A DNA stretch of 63,968 nt, filler included, from Octopus bimaculoides (Eukaryota), in the NCBI RefSeq assembly GCF_001194135.2. It is 5 parts of 5 records of this genome, joined end to end, with 100 filler letters (N's around TTAATTAATTAA, not from the genome) between each part and the next. Parts side by side here need not be neighbours in the genome. Positions count along the whole stretch, not along the records: positions 49,872 to 63,968 come from NC_068985.1; 4 more parts are not named here. One strand, written 5' to 3'. Each line of letters opens with the position of its first letter. The first letter of the stretch is position 1. Below the pieces are notes generated by a model. It searched no databases and was not told where the DNA came from. It saw nothing but the letters and a program-made list of their open reading frames with translations. Shown in pieces: positions 51,287 to 54,200 of this stretch. The translations under genes and the position numbers were made by a program.

Positions 51287-54200
51287 ATATATATATATGT
51301 GTGTATATATATATATAGGGAGAGAGAACGAGATAGAGAGACAGAGAGAGTGGGAGGGAAAGAGAGAGACCGACTGTTGATTGATTGATTAAAGAATTGA
51401 TTGATTATAAATGTGTGTACATGTGCACATGTCATTATGTCATACAACAGTCACACCAACGTAATATGATTTTCGATAATATCGTTGGAAATTGGAGTAG
51501 CGAGATTCCAATTTACGCTCAGACAGTTCAAACCTTTCTGTCTTACTTGAATATAATCAAACTATAGACAAGGGAGACATTTTTTTTTGCTTTTCTCTTC
51601 GTAATATAACTTCTTGGAAAATACGTATAGTGTCTCACAATTCTTTCAGCGAATATGTATATGTGTGTGCGTGTATGTATGTGTGTGTGTGAGTGTGTGT
51701 GAACGAGATGGTGTAAAATGCTTACAGCACCTGGGTTTCCCAAGCGGTCACCCATCTAAGTACTCACTAGGATCGACGTTGATTAACTTCGGTGATTGAC
51801 GAGAACCGGTGCATTTAACGCGCATAGCTCAGTGCTTAGAGCATCGGGCTCACAATCTTGAGGTAGTGTGTTCGATTCCTGGAACGGGCTGTGTGTTGTG
51901 TTCTTGAGAAAAACACTTTATTTCATGTTGCTCCAGTTCATACAGCTGTAGAAATGAGTTGCGACATTATTGGTGCCAAGCTGTATCTGCCTTTGCCTTT
52001 CCCTTGGATAAAATCGATGGGGAGGTTGGATTCTTCCATTAAAACAACAACATTGTCTGGACTTGTGCCTTGGAGGGTAACTTTGTAGGTGCAATTCCAT
52101 GGTCATTTATGATCTAAAGCCTGACAGAATATCATTGAATTCTCCTGTTTTTCTGCCCGTTTTCAGGTAGAATATCATGTAGTCCAACAGCCTTTGGAAT
52201 TTGGTGATTTTAAGGACTTCCTTCAAATCATCAATGGTTAAATCGTCATTCATGATACCATGCGCATGGACAATAACTGATGTTACCTCCGTATCAGAAA
52301 CAGAAGGTAGAGTATATCCCCAAGCTAATTTTGAAGATGATTCCACCACTATTCTAAGCGTTCATATGGAAATCTGCTTTAATTATTAACTTGTTGGCGT
52401 TTTTGCGTCCGCATATTTCAAATATTATCTGCTACAATAGTGATATCAGTCTGTTTGCTGCTGCGTGTTTGATGCAATTTATTTTACTTTGGAAGTAGCT
52501 TTGTGGTTGAGATAAAGATGGACTAATTCTTTTTCACAATCAACAAGGATCTGCTACAAACATCTGCGAAGACCACATCAATCAAGTTGATGATTTCATA
52601 TACCTCGGTTCTGAGATAGCCTCAACTGAAAAGGATGTAAAACTCATATTGCCAAAGCATGGTTGGCCCTAAACAAATTGGATGTTGCCTGGAAATCAAA
52701 TGTGTCAGATAACCTTCACAGGAATTTTTTTCCGTACTGCGATTTACTCAGTCATATTATATGTAGCAGAAGACTGGATGCTTGCCAAAAAGCTGGAATC
52801 CCAACTAGATGGAACTTACATCCGAATCTTAAGAACAGACTTTAAAATATCTTGCAGAAATCATCCTACCAAGAAACAACTGTATGGAGATCTCCTGCCT
52901 GCTTCCATCATTATAAGAGAAGGATGCTTGCACTTTGAAAGACACCTACCAAGAGTTGGCAAGTGACCTACTGTTGTGGAGGCCAAAGCATCGCCGCGCT
53001 CGAGTTGTTTGTCCCAATACAACCTAAGATCAAATCACCACAGACCTCCATCGATTTATGGATGGCGTGCGAGAGTTGAAATTGCCCGAGTAAACTCGAG
53101 CAGATGTTGATAATGATGATGACGATGACGATATGTGTTTGTGCTTGTTTGCATACGTGTGTGTGTATCTACGCACCCGTTCAGGTACCATAGTCTCATA
53201 AATGCGCTTAAAATACTTACCATTCTGCTATCGCTCATACTGTCACCGTACGTATCACCGCGCATGTCACCGCGCATGTCAGAACGCATATCACCGCGCA
53301 TATCGGAACGCATATCACCGCACATATCGGTACGCATATCACCGCGCATATCGGAACGCATATCACCGCGCATATCGGAACGCATATCACCGCGCATATC
53401 GGAATGCATATCGGAACGCATATCGGAACGCATGTCGCCGCGCATATCGGAACGCATGTCGCTNNNNNNNNNNNNNNNNNNNNNNNNNNNNNNNNNNNNN
53501 NNNNNNNNNNNNNNNNNNNNNNNNNNNNNNNNNNNNNNNNNNNNNNNNNNNNNNNNNNNNNNNNNNNNNNNNNNNNNNNNNNNNNNNNNNNNNNNNNNNN
53601 NNNNNNNNNNNNNNNNNNNNNNNNNNNNNNNNNNNNNNNNNNNNNNNNNNNNNNNNNNNNNNNNNNTATATATATATACGAGTGAGTGGACAAACGAATT
53701 TATTGGGAGTTACATGTATGGATCAAAATAGTCTGGTAAGAAATAGTGCTGCTTGATACATTGAGATGCTGCAGACAGTCATTAAGCTGTAGATGCATGA
53801 AATGCACAGTGGAAGGCCATACGAGTTACTTGACTCGACACCTTCTCACAAAACCTATATAACCCAAGAATCGATGTCTAATAAACTTTACAATCATGTA
53901 ACATCAAACTTATGGCTTCCAAACTCGCCAGATTTAAATCCCATAGACCACTTCGTTTGGAGCGTTTTCATAACATCATAGCTTCACTGAAGAGCACCAT
54001 TGTTCAGATGATATTCGAAATAAATAAGAAATCTCAAGAACTTGTTCGCAATGTTTTTCTTAAAACGCATTTGGTATTTGTTTGATTTGAGTTGTTTTAC
54101 TGAATTACCAGATATGTCCTGAAATACCTCTTTCAGCTTGTACACACATACACACACACACACACATAGCTATACGGCTAAACTTTTTTTAAAAATTACA

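Follow-up and report, generated by a model that had tools for sequence, protein, structure and literature searches.

Organization of the S-crystallin locus

A stretch of DNA of 63,968 nucleotides from Octopus bimaculoides (RefSeq assembly GCF_001194135.2), joined from five parts and hereafter called the window, was analyzed. Positions 49,872 to 63,968 come from record NC_068985.1 and carry, on the minus strand, a gene encoding an S-crystallin (the host gene). An array of (S/G)DMR-encoding repeats lies between exons 4a and 5 of this gene; it is missing from the annotated product and probably represents the visible part of an additional coding exon, here designated exon 4b (e4b).

The host gene product is 98% identical to A0A0L8G7J7/XP_014783447.1 ('S-crystallin 2-like', 223 aa). 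The annotated protein is composed of exons 1, 2, 3, 4a (e4a), 5, and 6; e4a is joined straight to exon 5 and the repeat is skipped. The annotated product has the fold of glutathione S-transferases (GST), as indicated by the Pfam domains GST_N (1.1e-9) and GST_C_3 (2.5e-13), and the closest solved structure is that of OctvuS4 (5B7C, E 2e-104) followed by the squid GST 1GSQ. The pocket residues F98, N99, V102, and F106 of GST correspond to L100, D101, M104, and Q108 of OctS4 (PMC4976375); in the host gene these are M100, D101, M104, and H108, none of them of the GST type. By its sequence, the host gene belongs to the S-crystallins, the lens crystallins derived from sigma-class GST, as the first-pass annotation of this DNA had proposed. 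The variable loop of S-crystallins is located between helices alpha4 and alpha5 of the GST fold (PMC4976375). Without the repeat, the loop encoded by e4a alone is already eight residues longer than the OctvuS4 loop in the alignment with 5B7C.

Exons 1, 2, 3, and 5 were located by tblastn and by reading of the sequence, all on the minus strand; a slash marks exon boundaries. Exon 1 (61665-61797) extends from the ATG at 61797 to ...AGC C/gtaagt and ends in phase 1, and exon 2 (57144-57239) reads tttcag/GA ATG CCA ... GAA TTC G/gtaagg. Exon 3 (56470-56585) ends in phase 0 with ...YHDRDGRIM/gtaagt. Exon 5 (50992-51099; ttacag/ATG GAG ATG CGC ... GAC CAT/gtaggt) encodes 36 residues (MEMRMRF...GDH), and exon 6 lies beyond the edge of the piece.

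The conventional loop exon is e4a (54701-54754, minus strand), which is located 1.2 kb upstream of the repeat; it comprises 54 nt encoding 18 residues, is flanked by tttcag and gtacgt, and has phase 0 at both ends. Its core TCTGACATGCGC (TCT GAC ATG CGC, encoding S-D-M-R) recurs unchanged as one unit of the array (53283-53272). The same 12 nt were found in the O. vulgaris paralogue described below and in a Sepia esculenta mRNA, and a second Sepia mRNA (L013) has TCA in place of TCT, a synonymous change. The junction of e4a and exon 5 reads ...GATAGTAAACTG/ATGGAGATGCGC and ...GACATGGATAGTAAACTG/ATGGAGATGCGCATGAGA; the predicted junction of e4b and exon 5 reads ...AGCGATAGCAGAATG/ATGGAGATGCGC and ...ATGAGCGATAGCAGAATG/ATGGAGATGCGCATGAGA.

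The repeat array

The visible part of candidate e4b comprises 81 codons at 53221-53463 on the minus strand. Its translation yields 17 [S/G/T]DM[R/H/C] units, three degenerate units, and a final Met. Read codon by codon, the array is built from a 24-bp unit, TCC GAT ATG CGC GGT GAT ATG CGT; the degenerate units at its 3′ end are GGT GAT ACG TAC, GGT GAC AGT ATG, and AGC GAT AGC AGA, followed by ATG. Tandem Repeats Finder reported a period of 24 bp with 8.2 copies, 90% matches, 0% indels, and a score of 310. The 20-nt core of the unit matched seven times within the array and nowhere else in the window, with no match expected from shuffled sequences. Units of an older-looking variant type (GAC, GGC, and TCT) are located at both edges of the array. 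The tripeptide RGD occurs seven times and arises automatically from the R-G-D-M unit.

At its 5′ side the array adjoins an assembly gap of 203 N (53464-53666), which would hold the 5′ part of e4b and its acceptor. Direct reading of the visible array revealed no in-frame AG acceptor; we therefore rejected a shorter exon starting at an AG within the visible sequence, and the start of e4b together with its acceptor must be located in the gap.

The first-pass annotation had described the 81-residue in-frame peptide, its 17 regular and three degenerate units, the strong phase-0 donor in frame with exon 5, and the 5′ end hidden in the gap of 203 N, and all of these were borne out when the minus strand was translated codon by codon. 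It had also assigned the repeat to the position that encodes the loop, where long-loop relatives indeed carry their loop exon. Its loop length of about 145 aa holds as an upper bound only, as the exon must start somewhere inside the gap. Two further points need correction. The exon had been described as free of stop codons; four of the six frames across the 243-nt array are free of stops and a fifth contains only one, so an open frame is no evidence of coding. Furthermore, the repeat had been regarded as exon 4, joined to ...DRDGRIM of exon 3, and the real 54-nt exon 4 (e4a, 54754-54701), which sits between them, had been missed. Because this conventional e4a exists upstream, the repeat is a candidate extra exon and not exon 4.

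Other repetitive sequences were observed around the array. An open reading frame of 94 aa on the plus strand (52682-52966), within the intron between e4b and exon 5, looks like the C-terminal portion of a reverse transcriptase from a retroelement; this is a candidate only, and no Pfam match was obtained at E ≤ 0.01. A (GAT)n tract follows at 53103-53132. We considered whether the array might be the tail of this retroelement-like reading frame and rejected this possibility, as the array starts about 90 nt past the (GAT)n tract and its unit is unique in the window. Repeats of the type MRGD(I/M)RGDMR were also found in unrelated proteins of fish and other organisms, among them P0079 (Coregonus), P0085, and P0220. 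These and other proteins with RGDMR-like repeats were rejected as relatives, since the resemblance is confined to the repeat.

Evidence for a coding exon within the sequence

The array ends with ATG/GTAAGT; the donor hexamer (53215-53220, minus strand, with the GT at 53220-53219) directly follows the last Met codon in phase 0, and exon 5 starts at 51099 after ttacag. On the minus strand, GTAAGT occurs at four sites in 12.1 kb of non-N sequence, and three of these are the donors of exon 1, exon 3, and candidate e4b. The 9-mer ATGGTAAGT was found only at the donors of exon 3 and e4b. The frame selected by this donor is the only open frame of the minus strand, and among the frames of both strands it is the only one with the Met/Asp/Arg/Ser/Gly composition typical of crystallin loops.

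The differences among the 17 units were then scored against the 24-nt consensus. In the SDMR frame, 10 differences were synonymous and four were non-synonymous; with an expected synonymous share of about 20%, this excess corresponds to P ~1e-4. No synonymous excess was observed in the other five frames.

The 24-nt unit was also compared with both Sepia mRNAs. In each, the best ungapped match was located in frame and within the loop, at codon 166 (RGDMSSDM, 19 of 24 nt), and a match of this quality was equaled by 0-1 of 100 codon-shuffled controls. Candidate e4b ends with the codons GAT AGC AGA ATG/gt; O. vulgaris has GAC AGC ATG/gt and Sepia has GGA AGA ATG at the corresponding place. As peptides, these ends read SDSRM for the host gene, NEDSM or NEDCM for the Octopus paralogues, and EGRM or DGRM for the Sepia and squid loops. 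These codons and peptides identify the 3′ end of candidate e4b as homologous to the e4b ends of its relatives. We infer that this 3′ end and its donor would be ancestral, and that the array would have originated by recent in-frame amplification of an ancestral G-D-M-x-S-D-M-x motif.

The ends of exon 3 and candidate e4b are alike as well: AGA ATA ATG/GTAAGT (56461-56478) and AGC AGA ATG/GTAAGT (53212-53232), both on the minus strand. The Sepia peptide ends that match exon 3 and e4b are EGRIM and EGRM, respectively. One might speculate that a duplication of the 3′ end of exon 3 gave rise to the first e4b.

Long loops in Octopus, cuttlefish, and squid

A long-loop S-crystallin of O. vulgaris (P0029) was mapped on its chromosome and found to consist of seven exons. 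Its loop of 72 residues is split between a 54-nt e4a (FDRISDMRSMYHQKFENM; 24088-24141 of the locus L001) and, 3.7 kb further on, a separate e4b of 147 nt (L001 27822-27968). This e4b, cag/GGT...GAC AGC ATG/gtacgt, has phase 0 at both ends and encodes an (SSM)n repeat. The orthologous gene of O. bimaculoides (XP_014783449.1), whose accession number is two away from that of the host gene, has the same exon structure with e4a at 17051-17104 and an annotated e4b at 20088-20234 of the locus L014. In the chromosome-scale assembly GCA_001194135.2 this paralogue locus contains many gaps, and it does not overlap with the piece studied here.

Comparison of the paralogue's e4b between O. bimaculoides and O. 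vulgaris revealed 142 of 147 nt to be identical, with four of the five differences at third codon positions; the flanking introns are 86-92% identical. From this pattern of substitutions, the paralogue's e4b is under purifying selection, and the conservation therefore indicates that exons of the e4b type serve as functional coding sequence in Octopus. The O. vulgaris locus L001 was rejected as the orthologous locus of the host gene: only the exons (73-81% identity) and dispersed repeats match, and they do so in a non-collinear way.

Long loops were also found in transcripts of other cephalopods. The contigs that encode the full-length 311-aa proteins of Sepia (P0009, P0010, and P0090) measure about 1.3 kb and lack introns. 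In the sequence collection, P0090 is found in 61 indexed blocks and comes from at least 10 different RNA-seq runs; papers on the Sepia esculenta larval transcriptome name three of the run accessions for P0010 and P0090. The Sepia loop consists of an e4a-like part of 18 residues (Y[DE]RMSDMR[ST]RY[IM]DMDGRM) and an e4b-like part of 88 residues. It contains ...RGDMSSD[MI]NSG..., and that of P0009 also contains ...TDMSSDMSSDSRQRDNAF..GRM. In squid, SL18 of Nototodarus sloanii (P27016, 308 aa) has a loop of 108 residues, and a partial lens cDNA of Ommastrephes (AAB22101, 304 aa) encodes one of about 190 residues with its own internal repeats. Inclusion of an equivalent long loop in the mRNA is thus established for the Sepia esculenta transcripts and the squid lens cDNAs.

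Protein collections were searched in two ways: by a word-indexed search of 5.8 billion proteins and by an exhaustive search of 1.84 billion representatives (clusters at 50% identity), of which the best 150 matches were considered. Neither the word-indexed search of the 5.8 billion proteins nor the best 150 matches to the 1.84 billion representatives revealed another S-crystallin with the (S/G)DMR repeat. When e4a, e4b, and exon 5 together were compared with these representatives, mostly unrelated low-complexity repeat proteins and known S-crystallins were obtained, including the Ommastrephes lens cDNA. A word-indexed search with the C-terminal half (e4a, exon 5, and exon 6) yielded two candidates and one paralogue, and no orthologue or transcript fragment.

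Repeats and a duplication in intron 1 and the upstream region

Dispersed families resembling short interspersed elements, several of them with (AAT)n or (TAA)n tails, are located in intron 1 and in the upstream region (58933-59034, 59735-59836, 60795-61055, and 63159-63200; also 56256-56304 and 60484-60532). Many copies of these elements are also present in the O. vulgaris locus L001, where positions 21027-21308 are 90% identical to 60481-60757 of the window. Additionally, two stretches of 139 nt in intron 1, shortly after exon 1 (61183-61321 and 61436-61574), are 100% identical and flank a gap of N at 61322-61435; this pair is most likely an artefact of duplication during assembly.

Status of the candidate exon

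The repeat probably belongs to a real coding exon, e4b, of which it is the visible 3′ portion; this exon would be located between e4a and exon 5 and used either constitutively or as a cassette. What can be seen of it is an open frame, a phase-0 GTAAGT donor, and an end of the type ...D-S-R-M, with the 5′ end lying within the gap of 203 N. Its inclusion in the mRNA is predicted. Joining of e4a to exon 5 and joining of e4a to e4b and then to exon 5 both preserve the frame; e4b may therefore be a cassette exon. Current gene models would omit e4b because the exon runs into the assembly gap.

Several observations weigh against this assignment. The acceptor and the 5′ part of the candidate are hidden in the gap. 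UniProt A0A0L8G7J7 and RefSeq XP_014783447.1 both give the same 223-aa product in which the repeat is skipped. Protein searches of the collections described above revealed no O. bimaculoides transcript or peptide with the repeat; the searchable collections contained no transcript or peptide of the host gene in either isoform, and the 223-aa product is alone in its cluster and stems from annotation only. A period that is a multiple of three and an open frame both come cheaply to a repeat of which four frames are open, and the near identity of the units implies a young array. The test for synonymous excess counts changes that are not independent, as units were copied and homogenized, and several of the sites are CpG. 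In a more conservative recount we estimate about five synonymous to three or four non-synonymous events (P ~0.01). Finally, the losses of Arg, R to H (CGT to CAT) and R to C (CGC to TGC), are the expected products of neutral CpG decay.

Most of these points would also fit a relic, namely an ancestral e4b which is now always skipped, so that the array would be an intronic minisatellite grown neutrally from the old exon, and donor and frame would survive as the expansion is recent. The skipping of the repeat in both gene models, the failure to find transcripts containing it in the collections searched, the CpG-type losses of Arg, and the four open frames agree with this explanation, as do the 90% matches without indels, which indicate a recent array, and the abundance of other microsatellites and fragments of mobile elements in the region. 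Nevertheless, we regard it as rather unlikely. The synonymous excess is confined to the frame that fits both the donor and exon 5, the donor is a perfect consensus, and the 39 degenerate and presumably oldest nucleotides at the 3′ end have kept the frame and acquired no stop. Furthermore, in three Octopus species the e4b of the sister paralogue has been maintained by purifying selection. The skipping by annotation counts for little, because a predictor cannot build an exon that starts within a run of N.

The proximity of a gap also raises the question of whether the array is a collapsed, chimeric, or misplaced piece of short-read sequence, foreign to this intron in its present form. The array directly abuts the gap of 203 N, and the same piece contains a clear gap artefact in the identical 139-nt stretches of intron 1. 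However, it continues unbroken into unique sequence with the donor and the downstream intron, its units differ in an ordered way with older-looking ones at both edges, and its position matches that of e4b in the homologues. Such an origin is therefore most improbable; the copy number of the array may be wrong, and it is unlikely that its presence is an artefact. Another explanation accepts a real exon that would act by a specific motif, either the seven RGD tripeptides or spaced Asp residues binding divalent cations, and not as a generic disordered loop. RGD does recur in the loops of Sepia (P0009 and P0010, one copy each) and Ommastrephes (P0184, four copies). Yet it follows automatically from the R-G-D-M unit and may only reflect composition, it is absent from the paralogue loop of O. 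vulgaris and O. bimaculoides, and S-crystallins are cytoplasmic lens proteins. We give this explanation hardly any credence.

Predicted properties of the extended loop

With e4b included, the alpha4-alpha5 loop, otherwise about 20 residues long, would have a minimum of 99 residues (18 + 81) and a maximum of about 165, the upper value assuming that the size of the gap is estimated correctly and that the gap consists entirely of exon. The visible part of e4b contains 23% Met, 20 Asp, and 16 Arg; it has a charged fraction of 0.44, a net charge per residue of -0.05, and a kappa of 0.03, and its charges are therefore almost perfectly mixed. Compared with the Sepia and SL18 loops the charged fraction is about twice as high, and compared with the Gly/Ser/Met loops of squid about seven times as high. 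AlphaFold2, applied to the e4b peptide alone, predicted one helix of four residues and otherwise essentially no secondary structure (mean pLDDT 50.6), which weakly suggests that the peptide is disordered. According to the Das-Pappu rule, a well-mixed polyampholyte is expected to be an expanded, solvated coil.

The e4b loop would then be a disordered, near-neutral, and solvated polyampholyte, one of which would project from each subunit of the dimer. A role as a spacer with weak multivalent contacts of Asp with Arg and of Met seems at least as likely as that of the multivalent 'sticker' suggested in the first-pass annotation, which overstated this mechanism. By analogy with squid, such an isoform with a long loop and a low packing density might set the spacing between particles and provide weak cross-linking in a lens layer of low refractive index. 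In the account given by Harmon et al. (2017; PMC5703641), Cai et al. (2017) traced the degree of physical cross-linking across the squid lens, and with it the gel density, to the diversity of the disordered S-crystallin loops and of their lengths. The function suggested for e4b follows from this analogy with the patchy-colloid loops of squid; these loops are essentially uncharged, whereas e4b would be a strong, well-mixed polyampholyte.

The most far-reaching version of this proposal would be an octopus lens S-crystallin with a strictly periodic (S/G)DMR polyampholyte loop of 100-165 residues, encoded by an exon consisting of an unstable 24-bp minisatellite. The lens gel would be assembled by electrostatic contacts that depend on salt, pH, and loop length, and not by uncharged Gly/Ser/Met contacts as in squid; differences in copy number, whether among individuals or among species, would directly tune how proteins are spaced in one layer and the refractive index of that layer. 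We consider this version as a whole to be very doubtful.

If the exon is used, the reference protein XP_014783447.1/A0A0L8G7J7 with its 223 aa is short by at least 81 residues, that is, by more than a quarter of the protein. Octopods would then, like squids and cuttlefish, diversify their crystallins by expansion of short tandem repeats in a dedicated loop exon, with a product that is charged and perfectly periodic. Such a gene, with a unit of four residues and a variable copy number, would be a natural test case for the effect of loop length and charge pattern on gel density and refractive index. Detection of such loops meets practical obstacles: trypsin cuts after each Arg and releases peptides of four residues, so that standard lens proteomics would miss the loop, with only one diagnostic tryptic peptide of 12 residues provided by the repeat exon, and short-read assemblies break on arrays of this kind. 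Hence, such loops may be under-reported in catalogues of cephalopod crystallins.

Comparison with known S-crystallins

The first-pass annotation had presented the loop as novel. This holds for the (S/G)DMR array, which the two protein searches described above (the second limited to its best 150 matches) found in no other S-crystallin. It does not hold for the kind of loop: long, two-part, charged, and repetitive loops are already known, and the novelty is less than had been claimed because squid lens cDNAs of the early 1990s, the Sepia transcripts, and the Octopus paralogue already possess such loops. What is known comprises very long alpha4-alpha5 loops that are two-part, charged, and internally repetitive, as well as the tandem-repeat loops of loliginids. 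What is new is a probable, unannotated exon in a named gene and its near-perfect (S/G)DMR array.

Among the octopus proteins, OctS1-4 (215 aa; 5B7C) are 70-74% identical to the host gene product in the N- and C-terminal domains; their pocket residues are likewise of the crystallin type, and their loop is inserted at the same place, between alpha4 and alpha5. Their loop has 11-12 residues and is about 100 nt shorter than e4a plus e4b of the 272-aa paralogue, whereas the host gene has an e4a of 18 residues and the candidate e4b. The closest counterpart is the long-loop S-crystallin of 272 aa known from O. bimaculoides (XP_014783449.1; P0242), O. vulgaris (CAI9723148.1; P0029), and O. sinensis (XP_036358738.1). 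It resembles the host gene in exons 1 to 3, in a 54-nt e4a starting with F-D-x-[MI]-S-D-M-R, and in exons 5 and 6. Its e4b is likewise built from short tandem units, here the Ser- and Met-rich (SSM)n; it is separate, has phase 0 at both ends, terminates in ...D-S/C-M/gt, and is placed between e4a and exon 5 in the same position as the candidate. However, the 272-aa protein is a paralogue and not an orthologue, being about 66% identical outside the loop with introns lacking collinear similarity. Its e4b is annotated, in contrast to that of the host gene, and comprises 49 residues with a charged fraction of 0.08 as compared to at least 81 residues and 0.44 for the candidate.

The loops of SL18, AAB22101, and the 311-aa Sepia proteins, forms known here from mRNA or protein alone, start like that of the host gene with F/Y-[DE]-x-M-S-[DQ]-M-R and end with ...F-x-E-G-R-M before (S/L)EMR(L/R)RY. 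They have a charged fraction of about 0.25 and contain G/S/T-D-M units, RGD, and lineage-specific internal repeats. Their genes are decapodiform, and their loops are for the most part free of repeats or have repeats of another kind; a near-perfect (S/G)DMR array occurs in none of them. SL18 retains the GST-type residues F100 and N101, whereas the host gene encodes M100 and D101 (residues as in PMC4976375); a neighbour-joining distance tree placed the host gene at the base of the octopod clade, away from SL18. A relationship of the host gene to SL18 as an orthologue proper was rejected on these residues and on the position in the tree.

Long-loop S-crystallins of loliginids, e.g., A0A8E6P5D3 of D. 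pealeii (P0070), have a disordered Met-rich loop at the same site of the GST fold, built from the tandem repeats (GSGMM)n or (SGNMM)n. Candidate e4b is similar in its content of Met (0.23 vs. 0.29) and differs in its charged fraction (0.44 vs. 0.06), so that it does not belong to this low-charge type of loop. The exon fits the known pattern of variable S-crystallin loops, which it refines and does not overturn.

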